Below, one piece after another: positions 9,501-54,750 of a stretch of DNA of 64,000 nt. The notes beneath the pieces were generated by a model that was not told the DNA's origin, ran no database searches, and was given only the letters and a program-made list of their open reading frames with translations. How positions within the stretch are numbered: position 1 is the first letter of the stretch; each line of letters opens with the position of its first letter. Source of the DNA: Chara braunii (taxonomy: Eukaryota > Plantae > Charophyceae); the NCBI GenBank assembly GCA_003427395.1, contig BFEA01000021.1, positions 5,186,108 to 5,250,107 of the forward strand. The letters are read 5' to 3'. The translations under genes and the position numbers were made by a program.

Positions 9501-10726
9501 GAGAGACCAGAGAAGATCCCAGTCTGACCTGGAATGCACAGAGCAGGTCCACACCCATGTGATCAGATCTGACAAATCTGACCATAGAATCAAATCTAAC
9601 CCGAGTGTGCAATCCCAACAGTCATATGTAAATCAAAGCTCGAACCTAAATCAACCGCATACGAACCACGACAACACAAACTGAGCCTGAAGGATCTTAT
9701 TCTCCTTCAATCTGGTTGGGTCTCGTTCAACAATGGACCCGATGTGACCTGAACAGAGTCCGAGCTGGCTTTCCAGTCCAGCAGAACCTTGTGCAATCTG
9801 TCGAAAACCAACTGCCCGAACCAGCAGAACCATCTTCTTTTCCTTTTTATTTTTTCACGACGGCTGGCAGCAGACGTGGCCTCATATGGATCCTCATTTT
9901 AGCAGTGCGCAACAGTTTGATTTCGCTGCTGATGGCACCAGGCTCGAAAGAGTCCAGCAGTATCGCTGTTCCATCTGCTGATGCTTCTGATCTGATCTGG
10001 TAAACTTTGATCCCATCTTCAACTCTTATCTGATTGAGACTCAATCCTGTATCTGGATCCGGTTCGATAAGATGTGATCTGAATTCTAATCCATTGCAGA
10101 TTTGCAATCTGGAATCACATCGGAACCGAGGATGACACCTAAGCTGAGCCTCTCCAGTTTCAAACCCAATCCGTTGATGGCGCGCCAATCCGGGAGGCTG
10201 AAACCACATGTCAGCTAGGGTGAAACCACAATGTCATGTCATTAAGCTGACCATAATCTCAAAACGCCGATTCCAGTTCATCAAACTGGAAGCCACATAC
10301 GACACCTACGCTGAGCCGCTCCAGTTTCAAACCCAATCCATTCATGGGGCTCCAGTCCAGGAGGCTGAAACCACATGTCAGTGTCATTTAGCTCACCAGA
10401 ATCTCAAAGAGCCGATTCCAGGTGATCAGACTCGAAGCCACATTGATGTCGGGCCAATCACAGAGGCCGAAACGACATATCAGCATGGACAAGAGTCTCC
10501 AGTTTCAAAACCGATGCATTGACGGTGTGCCTGTCAGAGAAGCTGAAGCCACATGTCAGCGAGGTCAAAAGCACAGTGTCAAGTCATTTAGCTGACCAGA
10601 ATCTCAAAGAGTCGATTCCAGTGGACGGAACAGGAAGTGGATCTGCAGGTGTAATGTGATTTCCCTGGGAGTATAATATATACATATATATAGTCTATAT
10701 ATCGTCACAAACAGAACTGCCCGGTA

Positions 10727-10802
10727 AAACCGTAGGGTTCAGCCTCCTGATGAGTCGGTGAAACTCCGACGAAACAGTTTGTCACAGCCCCTCGTTTGTT
10801 GT
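10727..10802 (+). ncRNA. Second hammerhead copy, 5'-truncated/rearranged, opposite orientation
   Basis: TTCAGCCTC-CTGATGA-GTCGGTGAAACTCCGAC-GAAACAGTTTGTCACAGCCCCTCG is identical to the 13.8-kb copy; the original 5' arm is replaced by AAACCGTAGGG. Confidence 0.8.
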
Positions 10803-10836
10803 GTGGTATATATATACCACATGAATATATATATAT

Positions 10837-10940
10837 CGTCAAATAGAACTGCCCGGTAAACCGTAGGCAGAGAGGGAGAAGAGGACAACAAACGAGGGGC
10901 TGTGACAAACTGTTTCGTCGGAGTTTCACCGACCCATCAT
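10837..10940 (-). mobile_element. Third copy of the hammerhead element, catalytic core mutated
   Basis: Aligns to 13689-13795, but the core reads AUGAUGG instead of CUGAUGA and stem I is absent; abuts (TA)n. Confidence 0.8.
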
Positions 10941-11150: not shown

Positions 11151-11798
11151 TCATATTGATCCATATGACCTCAGAGAAGACATAATAATGTAGAAGGCCC
11201 AATGCAGGAGCCATACGATGCTTGAGATTACAGCGAACTTGCGTGGACCTCCCAGTTCTCCACCAAATACATATCGTCTACCAAGCATTAGCGCGGTGGC
11301 GCTGAATTCTGCAATACAGAATATCATAACGGAAAATCCTGTTCCTCGCGATGCAATGGGGAACTCCTGATTGAGAACTAACCTGTTGTAAATAGAGGCA
11401 ACCAACCATGGACATCCCAGGCCAACAAACACATTGATGCAGTTGCTAGCATTTATATTCGCGATGGCAGAGTCAGCAGTTACTTCATTCTGTGCAGCGA
11501 TGTAGCTCCCAATCAAGTCAGGGAGACATGTGCCAGTCGCAAGGATGGTGATGGCCAAAACGAACGGATCCATTCCCGAGGCACAGCCAAACAGATTTGC
11601 CAGGTCAATAAGCACGTACGACATTGCCATGATCCATCCCACAGCACAGGCAAATGCAATGCGCCCATGCCAAATTTCTGGTGGGGGGATGAAAGCAAAC
11701 AGAACCTTCCAGAAAAAACAGATGAAGTGAAGTATGAAGTCGGTAAATGAGGGATCTGCAGGTTCCTCTGAGTCGTCGCCACTTGTTGTTCCTTTCAC
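11151..11798 (-). CDS. MHX: Magnesium/proton exchanger, last exon (C-terminal TM half with alpha-2 repeat)
   Basis: Translates VKGTTSG...FWKVLFAFIPPPEIWHGRIAF...LAITILATGTCLPDLIGSYIAAQNEVTADSAIANINASNCINVFVGLGCPWLV...GGELGGPR...YIIMSSLRSYGSI*, typical of plant MHX/NCX. Acceptor AG at 11800-11799; 648 nt, phase 0. Confidence 0.95.
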   Translation of the reverse strand: MKGTTSGDDSEEPADPSFTDFILHFICFFWKVLFAFIPPPEIWHGRIAFACAVGWIMAMSYVLIDLANLFGCASGMDPFVLAITILATGTCLPDLIGSYIAAQNEVTADSAIANINASNCINVFVGLGCPWLVASIYNRLVLNQEFPIASRGTGFSVMIFCIAEFSATALMLGRRYVFGGELGGPRKFAVISSIVWLLHWAFYIIMSSLRSYGSI

Positions 11799-11948
11799 CT
11801 GATCATTTTCCCACACCCAACCCCCAACAACATAGAGAGGAACAGAGCCAGACGAAAGAGCATAAAAGGGAGGGAAAGGACGGCTCGTGTGTGTGTGTAT
11901 TTGAGATAGAGAGAGAGAGCGAGTAAAAGGGAGGGACAGAACAGCTGA

Positions 11949-12023
<75 letters not shown>

Positions 12024-13748
12024 AACAAACAATCGCCAAGATTACATCAGTGAATGCAACACTGTTGGCTTCTGAATGTCAGAAAAAACGGAGGACAAAC
12101 CTTGAGCAACATAAACAGGGGGAGCAGTCGGGTCCACAAAATACAATAAACATTATAAACTCGGATAAAGACAGGTAGTTTGTTTTTTTAACTTTTCTAA
12201 GAAAAATTTCCTTTGAGAACAGGTCGGTTTTGGAAATTAAATTTCTGGCAAAATCATGGAAGAGATCAGGACAAGAAAACAGTCTCATTCTTCGTTCTAG
12301 GAAACTCAATTTCTGGTAAACCGTGGAAAAACTTAGCACTAGAAAGTAGAAAATAATAAAATAGTCCAAAAAAAAAAACATCCCAAATTCAGAAAAAATT
12401 CCAAAAAAAGAAAATCAAGAAAACACAGTCTCATTGATGTCTTGAATCTTCGACATGCCATACTCCACTTCAAGAACGAAACAGGATGATGTCTTTTCTT
12501 TTCTCCACCCCGTAAAACAGGACCTTATGCCCTAGCTCCATAACCATTGTCCTAGCTCCATAGCCATTCTGGAGAGCTCCATTCCTGTACCTTTCCCGTG
12601 GAGTGTCATTCCTGTTCTTTTCCCACCGGCAAGTCCCATCCAATGTCACAATTACATTACATCACTGGTTACTCAAAATCATGGCTATTCTGTCGACTTT
12701 TCCTTTTCTTTCTTTTTTTTTTCTGTCGACTTTTCCTGTTTTACAATTGCTATATCATTTTCAATATTCAACAGTAAATTGTTAGACTACAGCTGTAAAA
12801 ATTGCTATATCACCGGCAAGTCCCATCCAATATGTCGGCTATTCATTCTTGTTTGGCTCTTCGATTGAGATCTACAGACTCTCGAAAAACTATTTTCTTC
12901 TTATTTAATATTTACCACATTGCCTACTTTATTACCTTTAATAAAGTTCAATTCTTGTTTCTCCTTCCTATTAAACTGACGACGACGCTATGACTTTGTT
13001 CATAGTATGACGCACCCATGCTTCCTTCGATGGAGGCCAAACTTCGCCGCTGAAGGACACCCGATCAGCATGGATACATCCATGGCTTCGAGGATCGACT
13101 GTCAGCTGGAAGTTTTCAATTCCTCACAGCTTTCTTACTAGTTGCCAGATATTTTTGAGACCAAGAGTTTCAGCGAGTAGTCCTTGCAAGACCCAGTTCG
13201 TGCTGCTGCTGACGCCGAAATTATCGAGGCTCTCTGCAAGGTCTGCAGTTCTGTCCCTGAGCAGCCATCACTGCATGCTTTGGAAAGAACTGGCTATGGC
13301 AAAGATAAAATCGCGACTACAAACGATAACATTGAAGTCAGCAATGGGATGTATCTTAAACCACCAGTACACCTGGGCCTGCAGGTGCCTGACTGCACGC
13401 CAAGCTTTTACAAGCCGCCAGTGGAAAGAGAACAACAAACGAAGGGCTGTGACTATATATATATATATATATTGTCACATCACTACAAACTAAAAGAGCG
13501 CACTTTGCGGAACAAAGAATAAAAGCAAAAAACGGGCACAGTGATAACATGCAAAAATAAAAATAAAAATAAAAACAAAAAGAAAAAACAAGGGCAGATT
13601 GAAACCATTAAATTTCTCATTCTTCTTTGAACTCCACCTCCACTGTGCCTCTCACGTGCAAGGCTCGCCACGTATATAATATTATATATCGTCACAAACA
13701 GAACTGCCCAGTAAACCGTAGGCAGAGAGAGAGAAGAGGACAACAAAC

Positions 13749-13830
13749 GAGGGGCTGTGACAAACTGTTTCGTCGGAGTTTCACCGACTCATCAGGAGGC
13801 TGAATCCTCAACAGTCTGCAGAATCCCCTC
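13749..13830 (-). ncRNA. Type III hammerhead ribozyme, intact core
   Basis: Minus strand reads GCAGACUG-UU^-GAGG[AUUCAG]CCUC-CUGAUGA-GUCGG[UGAAACU]CCGAC-GAAA-CAGUUUGU. Stem III is 8 bp (two G-U), stem I 4 bp, stem II 5 bp, with an outer GAGGGG/CCCCUC extension. Confidence 0.9.
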
Positions 13831-14301
13831 ACTGATTACACTGTAAATCATAATCTACCTTAACCAAAATCAAAGTAGACTATCACACACCCACACCAGA
13901 TGAAAAACTCTGCAGACTGTCGGTTCACACCCCATCACAAGCCAGCAAAACATCCACGAAACAAAGAAAGGTCTGTCACAGCCAAAAAATACACTCCAGA
14001 CACGCCGCTGGCACTAGAGGCACAGCATGGCTGCCTAGTAACGGCCCCGACCACTGCCGCTCGACCTGACCGGAACAAACCGTAGCAGGAAGCCAGCGAA
14101 GTCGTAGCATATTATAATATATATATATAAATAACACTGGTTGCATAAAACAAAAAAGGAGCCTTATAAAAGAGCCTGATGGGCCTGATTCCATTTCCAA
14201 ACCCAAATGTAGTAGATTGTGCAGGAGAAGAAAGAGAGAGGAATAAGCAAAGGAAAGGAGAATAGAGAAAACAAAAAGAACAGAGGGGGGAGGTCAGGGC
14301 T

Positions 14302-14474
14302 TTTTTTCTTTAAAAAATTGGAACGATTGATGCATGTCATCCTTGCGCAGGGGCCATGCTAATATTCTCTGTATCCTTCCAATTTTAATCTGCGGCCTAG
14401 CTCAGTTGGTAAGGCACGCAAGTGCCATTTAGGAGGTCTTGGGTTCGATCCCCATTGGCCTCATCTACCTTCCT
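14302..14474 (-). mobile_element. Chimeric retrocopy: inverted tRNA/SINE head + U6 core + poly(A), 16-bp TSD
   Basis: TSD GGGGGAGGTCAGGGCT at 14286-14301 and 14475-14490. U6 on minus at 14324-14388; tRNA-like sequence on plus at 14392-14463 with A box TAGCTCAGTTGG and B box GGTTCGATCCC. Confidence 0.88.
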
Positions 14475-14941
14475 GGGGGAGGTCAGGGCTCGATAACTAA
14501 TAATGACTAATAATAATTCAAAAAAGAAAAAAAAAGAGTTCCAAGTCGTTGAACACTGTACGTGAGGCATTGCTCGTCACTCTAGTGGAGGGACTTCTGC
14601 AGAGAAGGGGGCTGAAGAGGAGGAACTGGATGCCCCACACTCTACTGGAGGGACTTGATGAGCAGCACTCTCCAGCTCAATGCGCCACACTGTGCTGGAA
14701 AAGAGGGTAACAGACTGAAAAGGCTGTGCATCAAAACGACTCTTAAGTTCTGAACACGTTTCCAAAGCATGAATTGCAGAAACCTTCAAATCCGACATTA
14801 CATCATTCGCACACACACAAATGGTGCCTCGCGTAGTACACCCTCCGCGACGTGAACAGAGTAGACAAAATCCGAAAAACTTCAATAATACATCTCTTGT
14901 GGCACTTGTGTTGCATTTCGACCACCACCTTTGCCCGGGGC

Positions 14942-15480
14942 TATTCAGCCTTCCCCAAACCCAAATTGACATCATCGGGTCGGTCAAGCCGACCCCCATG
15001 TCACGTTGCCGGAAAAAGTGGACGGGAAACTAAAGACGTATACCCTAAATACTATCTACGTCAAACTTACCAACAACTCCACTGTCTGTGTCCACAGACT
15101 CCACACTGCTTTGCATATTCAGCCTTCCCCAAAACCAAATTGACATCTTCGGGTCAGTCAAGCTGACCCCCATGTCACATTGCCGGAAAAAGTGGACGGG
15201 AAACTAAAGATGTAAACCCTAAGTACTATCTACGTCAAACTTAACAAACAACTCCACTGTCTGTGTCCACAGACTCCACACTGCTTTGCATATTCAGCCT
15301 TCCCCAAACCCAAATTGACGTCATCGGGTCGGTCAAGCCGACCCCCATGTCACATTGCCGGAAAAAGTGGACGCCGGAAAAGGCGGACGGGAAACTAAAG
15401 ATGTAAACCCTAAATACTATCTACGTCAAACTTAACAAACAACTCCACTGTCTGTCCACAGACTCCACACTGCTTTGCAT
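14942..15480 (+). repeat. Tandem repeat, 3 x about 175 bp
   Basis: TATTCAGCCTTCCCC...GCCGGAAAAAGTGGACG...CAGACTCCACACTGCTTTGCAT repeated. Confidence 0.9.
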
Positions 15481-17879
15481 CTTCGCAAAAACTTTACCAG
15501 CACCTTCTAGGAAAACCAATCTGGAGACTCTCCGTAAAGGCGGCCACTTTTTGACGTCTACGGGTCCAGGACCTGTAGTCCTGCCCGATTCTGATCCCAA
15601 GGACTTCAGATTCCCAGATCGTACCTTCATTTTTGACCTTCTGTACCGACCCCCGAAACCGAAGTACAACACTCGTTCTACACCCCAAAAACTCCCAAGA
15701 CCCCGACTAGTCATCAGTTCTCTTTACCGTCAAATTCCGTGGGTAGCACCTTGCAAACCACCGTCTGATCTGAATCCCTTTCAATTCCCACGTCGGCAAG
15801 CAATGGAAAGGGAAACGTCATCCACCAAGCGGAAGCCGCAGAACAACTTCCGGTCGACACCAATGGACCCCGGAAAACGCTACCCCGAGCATCCAAGAGT
15901 ACTTTTCCCAACGCGGACATAACCCTGAGCCTTAGAAGCACTCCCGACGCTGTGGTTAAGGGTACGAGCCCCACAGATCAAAAGCCACAAACTCCCTTAC
16001 TTCAACTACGGCCACAAGCCACCAAACGGAACCCGCACACCAACTTTCGATCAACACCATTGCACCAATGGACCCCAGAAAACCTCACTCTGCACATGCA
16101 CACATGATGCATGCATGCGAGTGGCAGATTCATAATTTGCCCATAGGCCATGGCGACATAAGTTACATAACCCTCAGTAACAGTATGAGCCAGCCACAAA
16201 CTCGCTTACTTCAACTTATGTCCACAGGCCACCACTGCTATACATTCTTAAAAATCAAACAATGTACCCTTTCCTCCTGGATCGAATGGAATCCCCTTTA
16301 TAAGTTCATACCTTCTCAGACAAGCACCCTGGCCTCTGCGATTGACTGGAATCGACCTCCTACCTTTCGAGAAAAGCACTGTTGCATACTTGTGAATACT
16401 TCAACAAGTATGGGCAGAACCAAAGATCAACCAATTAAGGATGAGCATGTATGCAGCGGAAGTCTGAGAAATGGACTGACTCACATAGACTGAACTCATA
16501 CAGATATCACTCAACACACAAACAATCGTGAGATGGTGGGGTCTGAGCCAATCATAGACGATGCTCAGGCCCCGTACAACCATGCACAGATGAAAGGTGG
16601 GAGGAGAGACGAAGGAGGTGGGAGATGTAGGCAGCGCCAGATGTCACCAAGATAGAATCCAGTAGGTCACCGATATGGCAGTCCAAAATGTCATCGAACA
16701 AGATCAAAATGTCGTGGACAATAAGTCACCAATGTCGGAGGTACAGAGTCCTAATGTAACTGGTGCCAAATCTGTGATGCCGCCGAGTATCAATCCCAGC
16801 TACCTCCAAGTCTCGAATCCGGTAAGTACCACAGCCTCTTACCATCCAAGTCCGAACACTGATCTCGGTCCAACTCGAATCCAAATCTCCAATCTGAATA
16901 AGAAGATGAAGAATGAATCCGAAGAAGAAGAAGAAGAGTCGGAAGAAGGAGAAGAAGAAGAGGGAGAGGAAGAGGAGATAGCAGAGGAGGAGGGAAAGGT
17001 GGTGAGGTAGGGAGGAGGAGAGTCCTCACTACCCTGTCCTGGCCCGAAGCCTTACCTGCAGGATGCAAGGTGGCGCCTTGAATAGAAGCCCTCTGAAGTC
17101 GAAGTCCTCTGAAGCTATGGCGCCACAGGTAAGTACCAGGTAAGTACCTCGCTCGCTCTCTATCCCTAACTGGCGCTAACCTCGCACTGCTGCTGTAGCG
17201 CTGCGCTCTAAACAGAAATAGCGCAGCGCTCCTCCGAAATGCTGCTGCTCCAGAATGCCCAAGGGGGCGGCCTCCTGGTACCTAAGTACCGGTGTGGAAG
17301 GCCGGCCTCTATGCTGCGAGGCCGAGCCGTGATCTGAATCGTCAAAAGTGACGATTCAGATCAGACCAGCGGGCGGCAGCCTCAAGAGCGCCGCCAGGCC
17401 CAACGGTAATGTCGTTTGGGCCTGCCCGTCTGGTCTGGTCCTAAATCGTGGCCTAAAGGCCAACCGGGGGGCCTACAGTGGCGCCTCCGGTCTAAAGGTC
17501 CGGCCTTGGGCCTGGACCGGCCTCCGAACCCCTATCTGTCGGGCCTAACCGGGCCCGTGTGACAAGTGTGTAACAAGCACACTCTACAACCACCACTCCA
17601 CACGCCTCCATCACCTCAAAACATGCACCAAACGAGGAAACATGTGTTTGACATCAAATGAGGCTGACACAATATGCGCCTGCGAACAATAACGGCTAAA
17701 CTTCTCATTAGCCTTCTTTAACCTCCTCAGTGTCCTCACCACCTCAGACACAGCAGGAAGGTGAAAGTGCTAGTCCTGTGGAACACACAATAGCATCAAG
17801 TAGAGGGTGAGTGATACCCTCTTGGTCCGGTGAAAGTCGGACAGAAAGGGACCAAACAACGATGAAGTCGGATAAACCT

Positions 17880-18645
17880 TCCTTTTTTTTTATTTTATTA
17901 AACACAACCTTTTGGTTCTGGCTCCTTTACATTTCTGGGGAGCATCAGTCCGGTTCCTATTCCACCGGCAAGTCAAAAGGAAGTACATTTAGGACTCACA
18001 CACGCTCTTCCCCTTGAGGCCTTTTAAGGTAGGAGAACGGATGGCATTGATTACTTCTCGCCGGAGGGATGTACCACCCCTCACCCTTGCGGGTACCACG
18101 GATCTTCTGCGATCCACCTGCCAAAGTTAGCCTGGTTCCTTTTATTTTGACTCTAAGTGATCTAAAAGAGCCCAGAATTATGGACCCTGTAGGCTTGCTT
18201 CAGGGAGGCCTCATCTCACCTGTTCCTCTAAGTACTGCCAGATTCTCTTTAAGCACGAGAACTGTAGACTTGATCATCCTCAATAGGTATTGGTACAACT
18301 CTAAAGAGTCTAAACCCTCCTTGGTCTAGTTACTAATGCCAATGGGTGAGATTAAAATCTCTCATCCTTTTATCATCTTTCCACATCTACAAAATCTACC
18401 TGGCGCTAAAACCTAATCCCTGGCTAATTTAGCTAGCCTGGCCTGTTAATCTTTACTTGAAAAATCTCTTTTCATGGTCTGTAACCCGGATCCTAAGTTA
18501 TTCTCGTGTTAAAAGGATAAGAGAGTCGTTTCAGGAAGTATTTGTGGAGAGGAACTCGTACTGTTTTGCTAGCTTGACAAGAGACTGCGTGGGGTGTTTG
18601 TAGGTCTAGGTTGTAGGATTGGATGGCTGATGTGTTCGGGTGTGT
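17880..18645 (-). mobile_element. 5'-truncated LINE 3' fragment
   Basis: Poly(T) at 17883, shared structured tail at 17901-18020, flanking duplication GATAAACCT (17871 and about 18646). Confidence 0.7.
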
Positions 18646-18942
18646 GATAAACCTATTAATGTGATAAACCTATTAAATCAATTTAAATGAAAATTTTAAA
18701 TCATAAATCCTGTTTTTTGGAATTACCTAACTTCATCCCACCTGCGCATCCTTTGCCCACTTTCCCACCAACAAAAGCAACATTAACCATTGTCCAATTA
18801 CTAATAATCCCTCTCGCCTACCGCAACATACCCTTCATTCCAAGAGGCCACTGACCATGTACGACTTGACATCACTCGTAGCAGTGCCATGTCACTCACC
18901 TAAATCGACATTGTCGAGCATTGGAGATGTGGAGCTCCAAAT

Positions 18943-18995
<53 letters not shown>

Positions 18996-18996
18996 N

Positions 18997-19074
<78 letters not shown>

Positions 19075-19618
19075 TCGGACAAAATTGGACCTGACCCAGA
19101 AAACTTTCCTACAGGCAGCTGTTAATGTGGCAACAATTGGCACATAGATCTGAGACTCCTCAGTCACCTAGGCTTGGATTTCCTTTCATTTCTGATGTTC
19201 CATCACTGTTGTGACCCTACCTCCCTCTCAAAGACTTTTGACACACGCACATTGCAATCAAAATGTTCAAACTTCCATCACCCGCACGCACTCGACCCCA
19301 ATCCAACAGCACAGCAACAACTCCAAGCTCTCAGCAAACAGTATTTCAGGCACGCCTTCCTTCCCAGCCTCAGAGACGAAGCCTATTTCATTTCAGTCAA
19401 GTTGAGAGTATATCGTTCAAAAGAAAAGAAAAAATAAAGGAACAAACTTCAACAAAGGGATATGCGATCACAGATAATCACCGCAGGTAAATCAAACATA
19501 TTCGACGATGGCTCGTCATATGGTGTTACATCCACACTTGCCCACTTAATCTAGTCCACTACTGTCATTATCACAAGAAGAAGATTCTGATTGAGTGTAG
19601 AAGAGGGAAGGGAAATAC

Positions 19619-19857
19619 CGTCATTGCATCGCAGAATTGATCTCTCCACAAGCTCTTTATGTCCTCCCAACCGAGAGGCTCAACAAAAGATAGAGCTCTA
19701 GATAGAGGTGGAACGTCCTGTGCTGCACATGAGGGAGGAGGTTGGTGGTCTTGCAAAGCAACGGTATGGCTGCCAGATTGCCTGCCAGCTCCTCTGTCAA
19801 TGCTCTCTGTCGCTCGCTTATGACAAGGATTAATGCTGCTCTCATGATTCACCGGCG
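19619..19857 (-). CDS. MHX: MHX internal exon (end of cytosolic loop)
   Basis: Ends ...WEDIKSLWRDQFCDAMT, matching the MHX WxxQFxDA motif. Donor GT at 19618-19617 is phase 0 and joins the last exon. The 5' boundary (AAGCAG acceptor at 19859-19858) is uncertain. Confidence 0.8.
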
Positions 19858-20458: not shown

Positions 20459-20564
20459 GGCCTTCAGGACATCCGTTAAAATTGGAATGATACAGAGAAC
20501 GAAGATTAGGATGGCCCCTGCGCAAGGATGACACGCATAAATCGAGAAATGGTCCAAATTATTT
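20459..20564 (+). pseudogene. U6: Near full-length U6 snRNA pseudogene (plant type)
   Basis: GGACATCCGTTAAAATTGGAATGATACAGAGA..GAAGATTAGGATGGCCCCTGCGCAAGGATGACACGCATAAATCGAGAAATGGTCCAAATT. Small insertion after the ACAGAGA box, catalytic AGC changed to AGG, A-rich tail. Confidence 0.93.
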
Positions 20565-20604
20565 AAAAGAAAGGAAAGAAAAATGATAAAAAATCTAGGT
20601 AGGC

Positions 20605-20648
20605 TAAAATTGGAACGATACAGAGAGATTAGCACGGTCCCTTGCTCC
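20605..20648 (+). pseudogene. U6: U6 snRNA fragment
   Basis: TAAAATTGGAACGATACAGAGAGATTAGCACGGTCCCTTGC. Confidence 0.8.
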
Positions 20649-22452
20649 AAGACCGCGCTGATGGACTGTGATAGGTACGTTTTTCGGATTCTCAGGTACA
20701 TATTCCGTACAATGTCACAATTGCTCTTTTCTGTAATTGCAATAGTAGGCTACTGTCTTCGCCCGAATAGGATGCCCCGGTCATCATCGCTGTATCTAAG
20801 ATGGAAAGTAGCACCAAAACGGCTGTTATGACCGGATGTTCTATTTGAGTGAAGACAGTGGTATACCTTCCGCAGCTGGAGGTCGCAGAGCCTGTCCCTG
20901 CCCTGCGCAGTAGCATCTACTAAATCACAGAAATAAAAGTTGGGGGGCCCAAGAGTGATTCCCTTTCACCGGAATACATACACTTCATCGTTTTCCGTTT
21001 TTCAAATTCACCCCAATGGAATCCTGACACCCAAAGTCGTCATTCCTGGTTTTCCTTTTTTAAAATACACCCCAATGGATCTAATCTTGCTGTCAGTCTA
21101 TTGGTATTACCAGACACAACCCTTCACGACATAGAAATTGATAGGATAAGGAAATAGGTTCGGGGATTTTGGACGCACACGTCTCTACATAGCATGAGGT
21201 TATAGCCATGGGATACCCACAAACCCTGACTAGTATACGATAATTCTATCTAAAAAAGACAAAACTATTTGATACTATAGCCTTTTCTACACATATAGCC
21301 TATTTTCTTAACAGGGTGACAGCCTTGCGATATCATCATCGAACTGACTGGCCCCCTGTAGTTCAGATTTTTTATTTTTATTTTTATTTTTTTTTTAACT
21401 GGAGGGAAGAGATAAATTCAAAAAGGGCCCAGTAGTTCAGAATTATTTCATGCCATTCATCAGAATTATTTAGCTAAATGAGCCTAAAAAGGCCCTAAAT
21501 CACTTTTTCGGAAGTTTTCCCAAATTAACTGGGGCTGGTCAGCTCAACATCTCACTTTTTCGGAAGTTTTTCGAGGAAGAAGAGAGAGAGAGAGAGAGAA
21601 ATAGAACAATTGAACATATCCAGTAGTACCCACAAAGAACAGCTTTCAAAACAGAACTTCAGAAAAAGAAAAGTCGCAGAAGCTTCTGAGAACTGTCAAC
21701 AAGTCAAACGTTCGTGTTGAGCGTCTTTGGACTTGTGCTGCACCCCGTATGCAAAATGATACCCCGACGGGCACTCGCCACGCCTAGGGCCTCGACCAGT
21801 TATGTCCAGGTGAAGCCCCGGATCATCCAAAACGTCCCAAATGCAATTTGTCCCACTTTCGGTCTGGACTCCATGAGGCCTGAATCTTCTGGTACCTGTG
21901 GACAACTGTTAGATCATTCCCAATTGGCGGCCAGAGTTTACCTTGCCACTGCCTGAACAGTCAGTCTTGCGACTTGCTTGCGGCTACGACGCTGCACGTG
22001 AGACTTGAGAGGAGGTGCTGGCGCCAGACTCCTTGATGGGCGCCAGCCAGACACTGAAGTATAGAGAAAGGGAGAGGGCGGCAACGGCCGCAACCATAGA
22101 TGACGGCGAGGGAACGAGGAGAGGGAGAGAGAGAGTGTGGGTGATGTGAGTCGTCGTGCGTACGTATGTGGTTTCATCAGAAGCTGCTGCCGATTCTGCT
22201 CACTATTGGGGGATCGTTTGTCTGTGAGGGGCTGCTTCCACATCATCCACGTGTTACACAAGAGTACAGATTGCTGACATGGTGCATAGAGTACATATTG
22301 CTGACGTGGCACATGAGTACAGAGTGCTGACGTGGAACATTAAGTGCAGATTGCTGACGAGGTGCATCGAGTTAAGATTGCTGACATGGCACATTGAGTT
22401 CAGATTGCTGACGTGGCAGAGGTGGGGAGCCTGAGGGAGAAGAGGGCCTTAA

Positions 22453-23488: not shown

Positions 23489-23948
23489 AAAAAACCCTTA
23501 AAAAAAGAGTAAATAAGCAGCAATGCCCATCCATACCTGACGGACGACGGCTAGGATAGTGATCTGCATGTTCACGTCCTGGCTCCATAGGCATGGGCGA
23601 CATCCTTATACTGTGCCGATGCATCCAAAAGTCCTGGTGCTGTGGGTGCATCGCCCCCTCTACTTGGAAACTTGGTCGACGAGAGCCAGAGAATTTGTGA
23701 TGAGGTGGCGAACTCCAACTCAGCCGCCTGGGAAGTCAACAAAGAAAAAAAAGAGGGAAATCAGAGAGTGCCAACAGAGTCATCATAAGAACTCCAAGTC
23801 AACATTCCATTGGCTCCATAGACAAGAGGTTCTCAATTTCTCACACTGTGCCGATGCATGCACAACTCTGAGAGCTGTGGCTGCATCGTCACCGCTACTT
23901 GAAAACTTGGTCTACCACAGCCACAGCATTTGAGATGAGCTGGCAAAC

Positions 23949-24137
23949 TTTTTTTTTTTTTTTTTGGTTGAAAAATCCCTGTACCGGTGTGCTGGAGGGG
24001 TGATATGAGCAACCTCCTCTAGAAGCACCTGCTGCGGGTAGCTCCGGTCTATTGGTGGGGAGCAGCACCAGCTGGAAACCGACTAAAGTGTCTCATCATA
24101 TCACCGTGTAGTTCAGAACACCGCGGCCTTTACCCAG
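23949..24137 (-). mobile_element. Short retroposon of unknown origin with TSD
   Basis: Poly(T) 23949-23965; duplication TGAGCTGGCAAA at about 23937-23948 and 24138-24149. Confidence 0.75.
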
Positions 24138-26257: not shown

Positions 26258-26341
26258 TTTTAATTCCCCCCCCCCCCCCCTCCCCTTGCCCATGCTAATC
26301 TTCTCTGTATGGTTCCAATTTTAACGGATGTCCCGAAGGAC
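26258..26341 (-). pseudogene. U6: U6 5'-half retrocopy with G-tract/A tail and 17-bp TSD
   Basis: Minus strand GTCCTTCGGGACATCCGTTAAAATTGGAACCATACAGAGAAGATTAGCATGG. TSD TCTCAAGCGCAATATCT at 26241-26257 and 26342-26358. Confidence 0.92.
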
Positions 26342-32579: not shown

Positions 32580-33700
32580 GACGACAGAAACAGTTCAAGG
32601 AACAACAAGAGAACTAGAGCAGCGAAGTAAGAAACAAGAAGAGCGGAAGAGAAGCGAGGGTTGCACTCACTCTTACGAAATCACCCGGCAGCCATTGCCC
32701 TCGAGCAAGCTGAGAAGTGCAAGGCACCCAGCATTACCTGCATCTCCTAGCCATAAGGGGAGAAATGAATGTGTTTATATAATTATATGATTATTATTAC
32801 CATAATATACAATAAGGCATCGTAATTCCTGACTTGATCTGCCAGTCACCACAGTGAAGAGAGCCATAGCCATGAAGCTATGTCTCATTCCCTTTTTAAT
32901 ACAGGAAAGGGTTTGCCATAGAGAAGGGAGTGACCCCGCTAAAATGTGTGAGTACGTGGGTGAGTGAATGAGCAAGCGAGCAAGGGAGTGAGCATAGCAT
33001 GCATGTGCATGAGAGAACGAGCGAGTGAGCGAGCGAGTGAGCGAGTGAGGGAGTGAGGTGCATGCGAGTGAGAGAACGAGTGAGTGAACGAGCAAGCGAG
33101 GGAGCGAGGAAGTGAGGGAGCGAGGGAGTGAGTCCGTGATTGATCGAGGGAGTAAGTCAGTGATTGATTGATGGAGCAAGTGAGAAAGTGAGCAAGGGAA
33201 GGAGCAGGAGAACGAGCAAGGGAACGACTGAGGGAATGGCTGAAAGATGAGCGGAGCGAGCAAGTAAAAAAAGTGTGAGCGAGCAGGTGAGGGAGCGGTT
33301 GAGGGAGCACATCGGGGAGCAGGGAGGGAGCACGGGAGGGATCACGCACACTTGCAAGGCATCGCTGGCAGTCCAGGCAAGCAACATTATAAATGAGTGG
33401 ATGCTTCTGAGTAGGTAGCAATTTTGTGGCTTGGCGGTGGAGTAGAAACCAGACCGACGATCCCCAGAATAGACGGAGTTGTTCTTCCTTACAAGGAGAA
33501 AAAGCCAGAGGGAAAAGAAAAGAAAAGAAAGCACGAGAAGAGAACACAGCAGAGGAGAAGAGAAACAAGTTCAGTGCCCGCCCAATGGCGGCATAGCACA
33601 CACATGCAACTGTTGATAGACAGGTCGCGAGTTCAAAATTCAGATCCTCATGAACACAATAATGTCAAGGGACTGCTCCCTTCAAAACAAAACAAAAATG

Positions 33701-34292: not shown

Positions 34293-35130
34293 GAAAGCAG
34301 TTAAAGAAACAACGTGAGAATGAGAGCGGTGGAGTAAGAAACAAGAAGAGCGGAAGAGAAGCGAGGGTTGCACTCACTCTTACAGAATCACCCGGCAGCC
34401 ATCACCTTCGAGCAAGCTGAGAAGTGCAAGGCACCCGGCATTACCTGCATCTCCTAGCCATAACGGGGAGAAATGAATGGGTTTGTTTAATTACTTGATT
34501 ATTATTACCATAATATGCAATAATACATACTAATTCCTGACTTGAACTGACGTTCACCACAGTGAAGAGAGCCGTAGCCATGAAGCTATGTTTCATCCCC
34601 TTTTTTTAATATAGAAAAGGGTTTGCCAGGAAGGTACGACTTCTTACTAACTGCGTGAGTGCATGGACGAGTGAATGAGCAAGCAAGTGCGCAAGTAAGG
34701 GAGCGAGAAAGTAAGGCAGTGAGCAGTAAGGGAGTGAGTATAGCAAGCATGCGAGCGAGGGAGAGGGAGTGAGGGAGGGCCGGAGTGAGCAAGTGAGTGA
34801 GTGAGCGAGTGAGCGAGTGGCGAGCGAGCGAGGGACTGATTCAGTGAGGGAGTGAGGGAGTGAGTCAGTGATTGATTGATGGAGCAAGTGAGAACGCGAG
34901 CAAGCGAAGGAGCAGGGGAATGAGGAAGGGAACGAGTGAGGGAATGGCTGAGAGGATGAGCAGAGCGAGCAAGTGAAGCGTGCGAGCGAACGTGTGAGTG
35001 AGCAGGTTAAGGAGCGGGTGAGGGAGCAAGTGAGGGAGCAAGTGAGGGAGCGCGCCGGGAAACAGGGGACGGAGCACGGGAGGGATCACAGGCACTTGCA
35101 ATGCATTGCAGGCACTCCAGGCAAGCAACA
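32120..35130 (+). repeat. Diverged tandem duplication (about 32120-33390 and 33400-35130) with a minisatellite expansion at 33654-34260
   Basis: Both units carry a degenerate LINE tail, a GGGTTGCACTCACTCTTAC block and GAGC/GAGT-rich DNA. About 10 copies of CACAATAATGTCAAGGGACTGCTCCCTTCAAAAC+(GA)n in the second unit. Confidence 0.88.
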
Positions 35131-50242: not shown

Positions 50243-53200
50243 GATAGACTGGTACGCTAAGGGACTCCAGGTAGTAAGCTGGAACGTCAACGGCTTGGGC
50301 AACATACTAACTGAGGAAGACAAGCTAAGGGATATCCGAACAAGCTTGGTGAGTAAAGACCTCCCCAGACCCGACCTCATACTTCTCCAAGAGACTCACT
50401 TGTCCAATCTGCACAACCACCAGAAGATACAACAAAAAATGGAGAGAATGTTAGGAGGTTGTGCTTTCGCACTGTGGACCAACAAAGAAGGCCAGAGCAA
50501 TAAAGGGACGGCAATNNNNNNNNNNNNNNNNNNNNNNNNNNNNNNNNNNNNNNNNNNNNNNNNNNNNNNNNNNNNNNNNNNNNNNNNNNNNNNNNNNNNN
50601 NNNNNNNNNNNNNNNNNNNNNNNNNNNNNNNNNNNNNNNNNNNNNNNNNNNNNNNNNNNNNNNNNNNNNNNNNNNNNNNNNNNNNNNNNNNNNNNTGGGT
50701 GGACATCAAATGGCAAGAAGAAGACGTGAGAATAATCAACATGTATGCACCTAACGCGGAATCCGTCAGACTGACTTTCTTCGAGAGTATCAAAACTCTA
50801 ATCCCAAAACACCAACCCGTTGTCATCGCAGGGGACTGGAACACCACCCTGAACCCAAACCTGGACCGGATATCAAGAGCAGCTTTAATGGGACCCACTA
50901 GAGCAGGTACCCAAATCCGGAATCTGATGACCGAGTTTGAACTCATCGACCCCCTCAGATCACTGTACCCAGCCAAAAAAGTTTTCTCCCGGATAAGGAA
51001 AAATCAAGCCAACCGGACATCCCTGTCCAAGATAGACTTTTTCCTCATCTCCGAGAGCCTACTCGGCACAATCAAAGAGGCCGAAATCCTTCCATCAACA
51101 GCGTTCAAGGGGCTAGACCACAAGCCCATCCAACTGCTGCTCAACTTCAATGGACCAGTGGAAACAGGCCAGGGGTTTTTCAGACTGAACAACTCCCTCC
51201 TAAAAACCGGAAGAATGGCTGAGGCAGTCAAAGAAAACTGGGCCCTCAACAAACAGCGTGAATCCAAACAGACGAATAGCCATCAATGGTTCATTGATAG
51301 TTATGCAGACCTAACACAGACGGTATCAGCGGAATCCCGAGAAACCGCCAGAGACCGCAAGAAGAGAAGGGAAGAACTCCAACTTGCAATAGTTGTCGCA
51401 GAAGCAAATCTGGCAGAAGACCCCTCCAGCAGATTTTATCAAGAACTACTCGACGACACCAAAGAGGAACTGAATGAGTGGAGAAGATGGGAACTGAGAG
51501 GTCTGCAGATCAGAGCGAGGATGACAGACTACACACTTAATGAATCCATGACAAAATTCTTCTTCGCCAAAATAAAAGCGAACGCAAGGAACAACATGAT
51601 AGAAGTTCTCCAGGATCCAACAAATTCCGGGAACATTAAAACAACAGGCCCACAGATGGTAAGGATAGCAAGATCACTCTACGCAGAATTATACGAATCT
51701 AAGACACCATCACCCCCGACCACAGCGAACACAGCAGCTCGACGGCTAATGCTCTCGTATCTCGACAAGACAATCTCGACTAGTCAGGCGAAAGACCTGG
51801 ACGAACCCCTGACCCTGGCGGAACTACACACAACTCTGACCCAAATGGGAAATGACAAAGCTCCGGGCATAGACGGGCTCACCAAAGAGTTTTGGAATTG
51901 CTTTTGGCCGACCCTGGGAAAAAACCTGCTAGACTTCTTCAACGAAAGCTTGCGCAGAGGAGGCCTAGGAAAAGAACTGAGTACCAACGTGGTCTCACTG
52001 CTGTACAAGAAGGGAAACAAAGAAGACTTGAAGAATTACAGACCCATTTCCCTCTTAACCACGCCCTACAAAATCCTAGCCAAGGCACTCGCGAACAGAA
52101 TTACAAAGCTAACAAACAGCTGCTTTCACATAGATCAAGCAGGCTTCATCCCAGGAAGGTACATCCTAGACAATGTAATGACCCTGAACGAGGCAGCAAA
52201 AAAGATCACAGAAAAACGAATAAAAGCTGCAATCTTATTCTTCGATTTCGAGAAAGCCTACGACCAGGTCAATTGGGATTTCCTCCACTTATGCATGGAA
52301 AAAATGGGGGTAGGCCTGTACTTCAGGAGTTGGGTCAGAATACTGTATGCTGACGCAAGAGTCCAGGTCAACAGAATCCTATCCGACACCTACCCCATCT
52401 CGCGATCTGTCAAACAAGGCGACCTACGGGCCCCTCCCATTTTCCTTTTCATCATGGAAGCCATAGCCTCCTTCCTCCGTAAAGACCCATCCATCGATCG
52501 CCTCACTGAACGGAATTCCAACCCGCTACACGACTTCGCCCTTCCCACTACACTCATGTTTGCCGACGACCTCACTGTCTTGATTCGCGCCAACAACAGC
52601 TCCTTCCAAGCCCTAGTAAGGGCAATGGAAGCCTTTAGACTAGCCTCAGAAATGAGGGTCAACTGGAACAAAATCGAAGGTTGGTGGCTAGCGGAGGGCA
52701 CCCCCCCTCAACCATCAGACATAACCACACCGATGACATGGACCACGGGAGAGCAAGCATTAAGGTTTCTAGGCATCATGATCAACAAGGAAGGGGTATG
52801 GCCAGGAATGGGCCAAAATCTAATTGCTAGGACAATCACCCGCCTGGCCCAATGCAAGAGCGCGCAGGCCTCTCTAATCGGACGGGCGTTACTAATTAAC
52901 ACAGCTATCTTCTCCACACTGTGGTATATGGCTTCCATCTGGTCCCCCCCTGACGACGACATCAAAAAATTGAAGAGCAAGGTGAGATGTTATCTGTGGA
53001 CAGGCGATCCTAACAGGACCACCTGTATAAACAGGGTGGCGTGGAANCACATCACCAGAAAACCACAGGAAGGGGGCCTCGGGATCATCGACCCCAAACA
53101 GGAATCCATAGCATTGCAGATAAAATGGATCCTCAAGATCTTGACTAGACAATTCCTNCCGTGGACCCAGATGGCGCTTGACANCANCANAAACCTAGCC

Positions 53201-54750
53201 CCCATCAACTCCCCCCNGAACATGAACGGTCTGTTTTGGCTCATGGCAAAGGGCTGGACAATAAAATNGGGCAGACCACGCANGAAAAACCCCGCACAGC
53301 CTAGCACAAACCCCACTCCAGCAGCCAGCCCATACTGGACCCCCACCATCAAAGCCTGGCGGAGAATGATGCCAAACAAACACGGGGCACCGGAAACAGA
53401 GAAGAAGTCCTGAGACAACCTCTTTTCTGCAACACGTGGATCACCGACCCCAGCGGAGAGGAATGGACCCTACGCTCCAAGGACCGCAGGTGGCTCTCCT
53501 GGGTAGAAAGAGGCGTGTGGCAAGTCAGACACATCTGGGAAGAAGACCAAGGACGATGGGCTACTGACCAAGAACTACGCAATGTCCTAAGAGGCTGTCA
53601 TACCCTCTCTGACAACCTTAAGCAGATACAAAATAGCATCCCAACAAGCTGGCTCCCCCTCCTAAGTGAGAACTTCTCATGGAAAGCGGGGGATTGGGGG
53701 GTACTGATAGCCCAAACTCAGCCTACCAGAGCATACAGATTCGTTGCTAAGACCAACCCATCCGATTATCTATCTAAGTTCTTCTCCTACCCAGTAGCCA
53801 AGCACACCACCAATGAGTTGGAAATCCAGAGCAGAGACCCCCACTGCGAGACACTAGACACATTTCGGCTGAGGAAAGTGAGAGTATCAAAGAACAAACC
53901 CTGGATACTCTTCAGACCGGACCTCGGCATCTCTAAGCTAGAGTTCGATCCGAAGGAATGGGATTGGAAACAGGACAAAACAGGTAGAACGAGAAGGATA
54001 GATGAATACGACGTCAAATTCGGTTATGAGTTGGGCCTACAAACCACAGACCCGGATCCCAGACTCAAAGAAAAATGGAGGGAAATTCTGAGCTTAGACC
54101 CTTCGGTCCCCGTGTCCATCCCGTGGTCGAAGTTCCTATCCATTAGACCAGTTAGGATCCGAAGTATGCAATGGCTCATAGCCCACGCCGCCCTGCCAAC
54201 TAACCAATAGCTCCACAAGAGGAGGAAGCACACAGACCCCAACAGCACCGACCTGTGCAAACTCTGCTCTGTTAACATCCCCGAAGACATACCCCACTGC
54301 CTACTGTACTGCTCGGAAGCAAAGTGGATCTGGAACAAACTGTGCAACCTGTGGCACAACCTCTTCTCGTCACCCCCCCTGCCCACGACCCCCCTCAACA
54401 TCTTGCTCTTATCAATCAACACTAACAACCTTAAAGGTGGAAAGGAGGTCTGGTACCATCTTCTCAGAAAGTTGGCTCTGTGGGTGATTTGGAAGAGGAG
54501 ATGCACCAAGACAATCGAAGAAACTGAGGTCCCAAGAGAAGAAATGTGGGCTCTACTACTGAAAATGGCGGAAACAGAGATTCGAGTCAGATGGAGGGAT
54601 GTGTCTGTGAGCACGAAAGGCAGACCAGAAAGGATAGCCGCAAGGAGACGAGTTCTTATAATAGACTGGCTTTTACAAGGGAAGATCGCCAATGTGGTGG
54701 ACAATAGATTGATTTGGAAGAAGTGGTACACCACAGGGACAGGGATGTAG
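50243..54750 (+). pseudogene. LINE ORF2 (APE endonuclease, reverse transcriptase, C-terminal Zn finger), disrupted
   Basis: Motifs SWNVNGL, LLQETH, AGDWN, KIDFF, DHKP; KAPGIDG, NYRPISLL, QAGFIPGR, DFEKAYD, KQGD, FADD, FLG; CKLC...HCLLYC. Frameshift near 53405 and stop at 54208-54210. Confidence 0.93.

Follow-up and report, generated by a model that had tools for sequence, protein, structure and literature searches.

Chara braunii carries three types of Chlamys Penelope-like elements, two with canonical hammerhead ribozymes (one 3'-terminal), and the hammerhead-bearing elements reach very high copy number in this alga (Craig et al. 2021, PMC8557442). Penelope-like insertions target microsatellites, are frequently truncated at the 5' end, include adjacent inverted truncated copies and have tails of 30-40 bp; the main text of that study does not give the type of the hammerheads and does not mention a masking hairpin (PMC8557442). 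In animals, the hammerheads associated with Penelope elements are minimal motifs of type I, whereas the type III form belongs to plants, their retrozymes and viroid-like RNAs (PMC7761336). In the retrozymes of plants (Cervera, Urbina and de la Pena 2016, PMC4918200; PMC7761336), which are non-coding LTR elements, the ribozyme processes the element's own RNA. Self-cleaving motifs also occur on the sense strand of introns, as in the amniote RECK and C10orf118 hammerheads and the HDV-like ribozyme of CPEB3 (PMC3088659, PMC10919898).

We analyzed a 64,000-nt stretch of the Chara braunii genome (the window), in which a type III hammerhead lies inside an exchanger gene. The reading that we consider likely makes this motif the ribozyme of a short, non-coding Chara braunii retroelement, one copy of which inserted into a (TA)n tract of the last intron and persists there as a presumably masked passenger. 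The argument starts from the motif itself.

The hammerhead lies on the minus strand at 13760-13819, or 13749-13830 with an outer 6-bp helix, as defined by its sequence, by Rfam RF00008 and by its fold. Its conserved type III core is complete (C3 U4 G5 A6 N7 G8 A9, G12 A13 A14, A15.1-U16.1, and an H17 that is not G): CUGAUGA occupies 13795-13789 and GAA 13771-13769, followed by the A15.1-U16.1 pair (A13768-U13811). The cleavage triplet is GUU, with U17 at 13810, and the predicted cut falls at 13810|13809. Stem I has 4 bp (GAGG, 13809-13806, with CCUC, 13799-13796) and is closed by the 6-nt loop 1, AUUCAG (13805-13800), while stem II has 5 bp (GUCGG with CCGAC) and spans 13788-13772 including the 7-nt loop 2, UGAAACU (13783-13777). 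Stem III is open and has 9 bp, formed by GCAGACUGU (13819-13811) and ACAGUUUGU (13768-13760); in the fold it is lengthened across an internal loop by the outer helix, GAGGGG (13830-13825) with CCCCUC (13754-13749). The minimum-energy fold of the isolated 82 nt is this three-way junction, with stems I and II loop-closed and stem III open (-33.8 kcal/mol, z -3.7), and the pair probabilities in the isolated 82- or 136-nt hammerhead are 0.86-1.0, except for the outermost pair of stem III at 0.68.

Comparison with RF00008 (Hammerhead_3) gives 44.9 bits over all 54 model positions (13817-13762), with E-values of 1.3e-8 in a 601-nt search and 1.4e-6 over the whole window. This score is 3.6 bits below the curated gathering threshold of 48.5 bits, and the motif is absent from the default Rfam listing; the core and the helices make it a hammerhead despite the sub-threshold score. 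The pattern CTGATGA-N(8-36)-CGAAAC occurs twice in the window, against 0.02 occurrences expected. The sequence-only reading had described a complete type III hammerhead, had placed its cut at the same position and had suggested an Infernal search with Hammerhead_3; the full core, the three stems, the full-length match and the three-way-junction fold all bear it out. On these features the motif is a genuine, apparently intact type III hammerhead, for which self-cleavage is predicted.

The host gene is CBR_g22437. An HMMER search returned a 100% match to GBG61639.1 (P0008), a protein of 1009 aa deposited as "hypothetical protein", and tblastn against the window places its residues 463-1009 in seven minus-strand exons running from 38793 to 11154. 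Residues 1-462 have no placement within the window; the deposited model is possibly a fusion or extends to very distant 5' exons. The last exon (11154-11798, minus strand) encodes aa 795-1009 at 100% identity, with the second Na_Ca_ex domain (Pfam PF01699) and the stop codon. The last intron (11799-19618, minus strand; 7,820 nt), delimited by tblastn of P0008 and by reading of the splice sites, separates it from a penultimate exon that ends at 19619, and has GT and AG at its ends. The hammerhead lies on the sense strand of this intron; from its cut site, 2,011 nt remain to the start of the last exon at 11798, a distance measured against the deposited, predicted protein model; the earlier placement in sense orientation about 2 kb upstream of the last exon fits that model.

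The closest relatives of the deposited protein are streptophyte proteins of ~500 aa (Closterium, Spirogloea and Marchantia; 46-51% identity). A cluster with the Vitis "magnesium/proton exchanger" is 39% identical, and animal NCX proteins score similarly. By these similarities, CBR_g22437 would encode an NCX/MHX-type exchanger, and the specific MHX label given to it from sequence is plausible; the exchanger class stands, while the narrower label meets a deposited name of "hypothetical protein" and a Vitis cluster at 39%. The gene also has exon-like duplicates: residues 510-527 match twice, at 100% and 94% (32685-32738 and 34392-34445, minus strand), and for residues 651-692 an additional match of 48% identity lies a short way upstream of the real exon (23839-23964 and 23535-23729, minus strand).

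The hammerhead is part of a repeat, of which the window holds three copies within 3.1 kb, plus a fragment. The complete motif lies in a putative single insertion of ~421 nt, non-coding, at 13688-14108 (minus strand), which is delimited by its sequence and by a shared 3' boundary. This insertion consists of a 5' region, a hairpin that contains the hammerhead, and a 3' tail with the terminal sequence ...GTTTGTGACGA, and is flanked by (TA)n-type tracts at ~14133-14109 and 13687-13673. Its 3' boundary is common to copy B and to the tail piece of copy A, both described below, and its putative 5' boundary follows from the (TA)n flank alone; the segment 14108-13809 has no second copy in the window. 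Neither an ORF nor a protein-family match is present in the ~421-nt element, and ARAGORN found no tRNA-like promoter or primer beside it. A scan for bacterial-type promoters and terminators stayed at chance level and is irrelevant to a eukaryote.

The two other copies lie just past the stop codon of the exchanger gene, ~2.9 kb from the complete hammerhead. Copy B (10824-10939, minus strand) is 94% identical to 13794-13678 and reaches the 3' end of the element beside (TA)n. It is 5'-truncated inside the CUGAUGA core, where A9 is replaced by G, and is without stem I and the cleavage site. Copy A (10687-10802, plus strand) is a composite, in which a hammerhead piece in the opposite orientation (10734-10802, plus strand; 98.6% identical to 13808-13740) is fused via an AGG microhomology to a minus-oriented tail piece (10736-10687). 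It scores 39.7 bits with Rfam at 10727-10780 and lacks a proper stem III or cleavage site. Among the three copies, only that at 13688-14108 has the cleavage site together with the 5' strand of stem III, and all 3' ends of the element (...GTTTGTGACGA) adjoin (TA)n. The inverted piece of copy A stops 1-4 nt from the ribozyme cleavage site, which fits a template RNA with a self-cleaved 5' end. Copy A would then be the expected product of twin priming on self-cleaved RNA, and as a single case it is only suggestive. A 28-nt fragment at 13426-13453 (minus strand), of the same kind as the sequence that immediately follows the hammerhead on its 3' side (GTCACAGCCC...), comes right after another (TA)n tract and may be a Penelope-type "tail" or a remnant.

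Several features of Chlamys-type insertions are present here: copy B is 5'-truncated, copies A and B are arranged in inverted orientation, and (TA)n is found at every 3' end and at the presumed 5' end. The element resembles Chlamys-2_cBra / PLE-X (PMC8557442) in its organism, in a hammerhead near the 3' end, in abundance, in insertion into microsatellites, in 5'-truncated and adjacent inverted truncated copies and possibly in a short "tail". For the family we observed three copies in the window, and genome-wide abundance is taken from Craig et al. 2021. The ~421-nt copy differs from Chlamys-2_cBra / PLE-X in having no ORF for a gag-like protein, a GIY-YIG nuclease or a reverse transcriptase, and the two are likened by description. 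The missing ORF points to a non-autonomous derivative or to a heavily 5'-truncated tail, and no ORF for a reverse transcriptase with a GIY-YIG endonuclease lies in or next to the copy. By analogy, the element fits the description of a member of the hammerhead-bearing Penelope-like type of C. braunii; our literature search found no paper on a short non-coding hammerhead derivative in Chara. The nearest reverse-transcriptase ORF in the window, at 50699-53413 (plus strand; 904 aa, RVT_1 1.5e-30, weak endonuclease match), belongs to a LINE-type retrotransposon that has no relation to the hammerhead element.

The plant LTR retrozymes share with the Chara element a non-coding sequence, a type III hammerhead, the plant lineage and a ribozyme that processes, or here would process, the element's own RNA. 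Unlike them, the Chara element does not have two direct long terminal repeats 600-1000 bp apart, each with a hammerhead, and its flanks are microsatellites instead of a 4-bp duplication. A tRNA-Met primer-binding site, TGGTATCAGAGC (at most 2 mismatches), does not occur within 5 kb of the element, and the count over the whole window is that of chance. With a single cleavage site at the locus, no unit-length circle can be released, again unlike retrozymes. We therefore reject a plant LTR retrozyme on its one complete hammerhead, the lack of paired direct repeats and the lack of the primer-binding site. The hammerheads of animal Penelope-like elements and Terminons (Cervera and de la Pena 2014; PMC7761336) are, like the Chara motif, tied to a Penelope-type retroelement, where they lie in terminal repeats. 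They are of type I, lack helix III and contacts between loops, and possibly act as dimers (PMC7761336), in contrast to the full type III Chara motif, in which stem III has 9 bp and loops close stems I and II.

The hammerhead does not stand by itself within the insertion. Alignments and folds place a diverged antisense copy of it upstream on the same strand (13905-13983, minus), and the two form a long, strand-specific hairpin of ~240 nt (13743-13983, minus), with the hammerhead in the 3' arm. Of ~80 aligned positions, 53 agree between the upstream arm and the complement of the hammerhead arm; the core of the upstream arm is mutated, such that it is not a functional ribozyme of opposite polarity. 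Its differences from a perfect complement are strongly one-sided: 14 transitions preserve a wobble pair (G-U in the sense RNA) and 2 create a mismatch (A-C), an asymmetry with a probability of ~0.002 under an even split. Folded as sense RNA, 256 nt form 97 pairs, including 20 G-U pairs, at -120.0 kcal/mol, and the antisense RNA of the same 256 nt reaches -66.9 kcal/mol with a single G-U pair; the fold in a 426-nt context has a z of -7.6. Since copy A and the hammerhead arm are 98.6% identical, whereas about a third of the upstream arm has diverged from the complement, the asymmetry would be older than the insertion and thus a property of the master element.

In a 136-nt context the ribozyme fold remains the optimum. 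Once the upstream arm is included (201-801 nt), the probability of stem III drops to 0 and the ribozyme fold lies behind the optimum by 15.7, 39.6, 32.7 and 35.6 kcal/mol at 201, 256, 426 and 801 nt, respectively. The hammerhead is thus predicted to be masked in cis by the long hairpin. This masking is a thermodynamic prediction, and helicases, co-transcriptional kinetics or proteins could permit the ribozyme to fold. In the Avsunviroidae and viroid-like RNAs, the strand of the type III hammerhead is also paired in the most stable fold, and cleavage proceeds in a transient alternative structure. The Chara motif resembles those of Avsunviroidae in this pairing and differs from them in that its competing arm lies upstream, is made first and has a mutated core, with no ribozyme of opposite polarity. 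Because the competing arm is transcribed before the ribozyme, the nascent pre-mRNA would offer no free time window, unlike the case of viroid hammerheads.

Based on the repeat structure and the folds, we propose the following sequence of events for the likely reading as a passenger copy. At the family level, the element RNA would carry a type III hammerhead ~120 nt from its 3' end, which, when folded, would cut after GUU and leave a 5'-OH end at GAGG. This RNA would be copied into microsatellites by a Penelope-like (Chlamys) reverse transcriptase/endonuclease, and copying back from it would yield copies that are inverted, composite or cut short at the 5' end. Both the full-length RNA and the host pre-mRNA would contain the earlier-transcribed, wobble-rich arm, with which the hammerhead strand would pair, so that the catalytic fold is predicted to be rare. 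The copy at the exchanger locus would then be a passenger, with at most incidental cutting of the intron. The sequence-only reading had allowed that the motif may just be a chance insertion, and it is this fallback that the repeat copies and the (TA)n flanks favor.

The hairpin itself could instead be the functional unit, in which case the near-perfect stem of ~240 nt would be diced to small RNAs that might, for instance, silence the family of the element, and the hammerhead would be no more than one arm of an inverted repeat. The great stability of the hairpin and its strand specificity speak for such a role, as does a weak Rfam match of part of it to a miRNA precursor (MIR6140, 16 bits, E 3.7), although this match is not significant. 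Against dicing, no catalytic nucleotide has been lost from the hammerhead arm, which is 98.6% identical to a copy A that has no hairpin partner, and we regard this explanation as unlikely.

The next alternative is that the ribozyme is active in the nascent transcript, where it would cut the exchanger pre-mRNA and lower the mRNA, either incidentally or as a Mg2+-responsive feedback. The intact core, the correct fold of the isolated motif, and the sense orientation with a cut site 2,011 nt before the last exon all agree with it, and part of its appeal comes from a possible contact between loops 1 and 2. Watson-Crick pseudoknots between loops I and II are predicted in ~40% of hammerheads (Perreault et al. 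2011, PMC3088659) and accelerate natural hammerheads at 0.5 mM Mg2+, and the shortening of one from 6 to 4 bp cost ~20-fold in rate (PMC3088659). In the Chara motif, UUCA of loop 1 is complementary to UGAA of loop 2 over 4 Watson-Crick bp. A run of at least 4 Watson-Crick bp between loops of this size is expected by chance in 4% of random loops and 9% of shuffled loops. The complementarity on which a kissing loop had been proposed is thus present, but at these chance levels the contact is unproven.

The stem II/loop 2 half of the proposed contact also occurs elsewhere. An identical 29-nt string covering the core, stem II and loop 2 is found in two phage-like metagenome contigs (L001, 8195-8223, minus strand; L002, 3461-3489, plus strand; IMG/VR contigs L003 and L006 are the same), in type III hammerheads whose loop 1 is AUA. 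A further contig, L004, holds a type I hammerhead in which the string has one loop change and the loop 1 is unrelated. Across L004 (5000-5028) and L005 (2344-2372) the string has one or two letters changed. The hammerheads of L001 and L002 sit just upstream of the start of an ORF. The exact 29-mer search returned phage-like contigs only and no relatives of the Chara element, and a metagenome scan for family members with the loops left free gave 0 matches. This likeness to phage contigs probably reflects a consensus-like module, not shared descent. The same stem II and loop 2 beside an unrelated loop 1 in phage hammerheads make loop 2 a generic module and leave the loop-loop contact hypothetical.

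Whether cleavage in an intron matters depends on its speed. Fast ribozymes in introns abort splicing and slow ones have no effect (Fong et al. 2009, cited in PMC10919898), and the CPEB3 ribozyme, which tunes its host mRNA from within an intron, is matched to the time taken to reach the next exon (Chen et al. 2024, PMC10919898). From the polymerase rate given in that study, we estimate that the 2,011 nt to the last exon take roughly a minute or less. With so short a transit, the ribozyme would have to be fast and to fold freely in order to matter; the hairpin speaks against this, as its competitor arm is made first and it is ahead by 16-40 kcal/mol. The Chara motif shares with the RECK, C10orf118 and CPEB3 ribozymes its sense-strand intronic position and a possible effect through a race between cleavage and splicing. 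Those ribozymes are single-copy and conserved across mammals or birds, whereas the Chara motif is a young repeat copy with predicted masking; the window holds several copies of it, in contrast to the single-copy state expected of a co-opted intronic ribozyme. A motif that is a copy of a repeat family instead of a unique conserved element, with a loop complementarity within chance and a generic stem II/loop 2, makes an active ribozyme in the exchanger pre-mRNA distinctly improbable in our judgment.

The regulatory form of this alternative had been raised in the sequence-only reading, as a Mg2+-dependent ribozyme that could feed back on a Mg2+ transporter transcript. Such a feedback, or any other dedicated role in the gene, is left unsupported by the repeat copies, the (TA)n-flanked insertion and the fold deficit of 16-40 kcal/mol. 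Only the name of the host gene ties the element to Mg2+, and the hammerhead does not appear to be a Mg2+ sensor for the exchanger gene.

A further possibility is that the wobble-rich, strand-specific hairpin is a built-in off-switch, which would silence the hammerhead in the full-length and read-through RNAs of the family; we give this very little credence as it stands. If true, it would explain the tolerance of intact sense-strand copies in introns, and melting or unwinding of the hairpin by temperature, helicases or ionic change would cut many host pre-mRNAs at once. We know of no description of ribozyme control that is conditional and genome-wide in this way. A DNA transposon (MITE) with a chance resemblance to a hammerhead in its terminal inverted repeats could account for the inverted arms of ~80 nt, which start with GGCTGTGACA and end with TGTCACAGCC, and for the TA-rich flanks further out, but we reject it as scarcely credible, given that copies A and B run ~70 nt past the hairpin to a common 3' end and are truncated on the 5' side only, that inverted repeats at the DNA level leave the 14:2 strand asymmetry of the arms unexplained, and that the hairpin ends are not directly bordered by a target-site duplication.

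As a single locus, the passenger copy in CBR_g22437 is a further representative of a type of hammerhead-bearing retroelement known from Chara braunii before and has little weight alone. The interest lies in the design of the family, which would combine a type III ribozyme, Penelope-style insertion and a strand-specific masking hairpin. A full type III hammerhead, the form of plants and viroids, in an element that inserts in the manner of Penelope is relevant to the proposal that plant retrozymes descend from Penelope-like elements. The predicted pairing of the ribozyme with a G-U-rich arm, which folds in one strand only, offers a testable reason why intronic sense-strand ribozymes are tolerated.

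Tracts of (TA)n, (GT)n and (GA)n are common all along the last intron, and a long compound (GT)n(GA)n microsatellite (11887-12032) lies directly upstream of the acceptor region of the last exon. Three to four U6 snRNA-like sequences (80, 74, 32 and 45 bits) all lie in introns of the exchanger gene, at 14312-14405 (minus), 20460-20563 (plus), 20586-20684 (plus) and 26290-26341 (minus), the last being a 5' half. In that at 14312-14405 the 5' stem is replaced, and on the minus strand it is directly preceded by the reverse complement of a tRNA-like 3' half; ARAGORN reported no tRNA at this sequence. These may be U6 genes, pseudogenes or chimeric retrocopies. Finally, two tandem-repeat arrays, each of three ~170-190-bp units that are 70-96% identical, lie downstream of the stop codon of the gene (10134-10637) and in the last intron (14895-15484).
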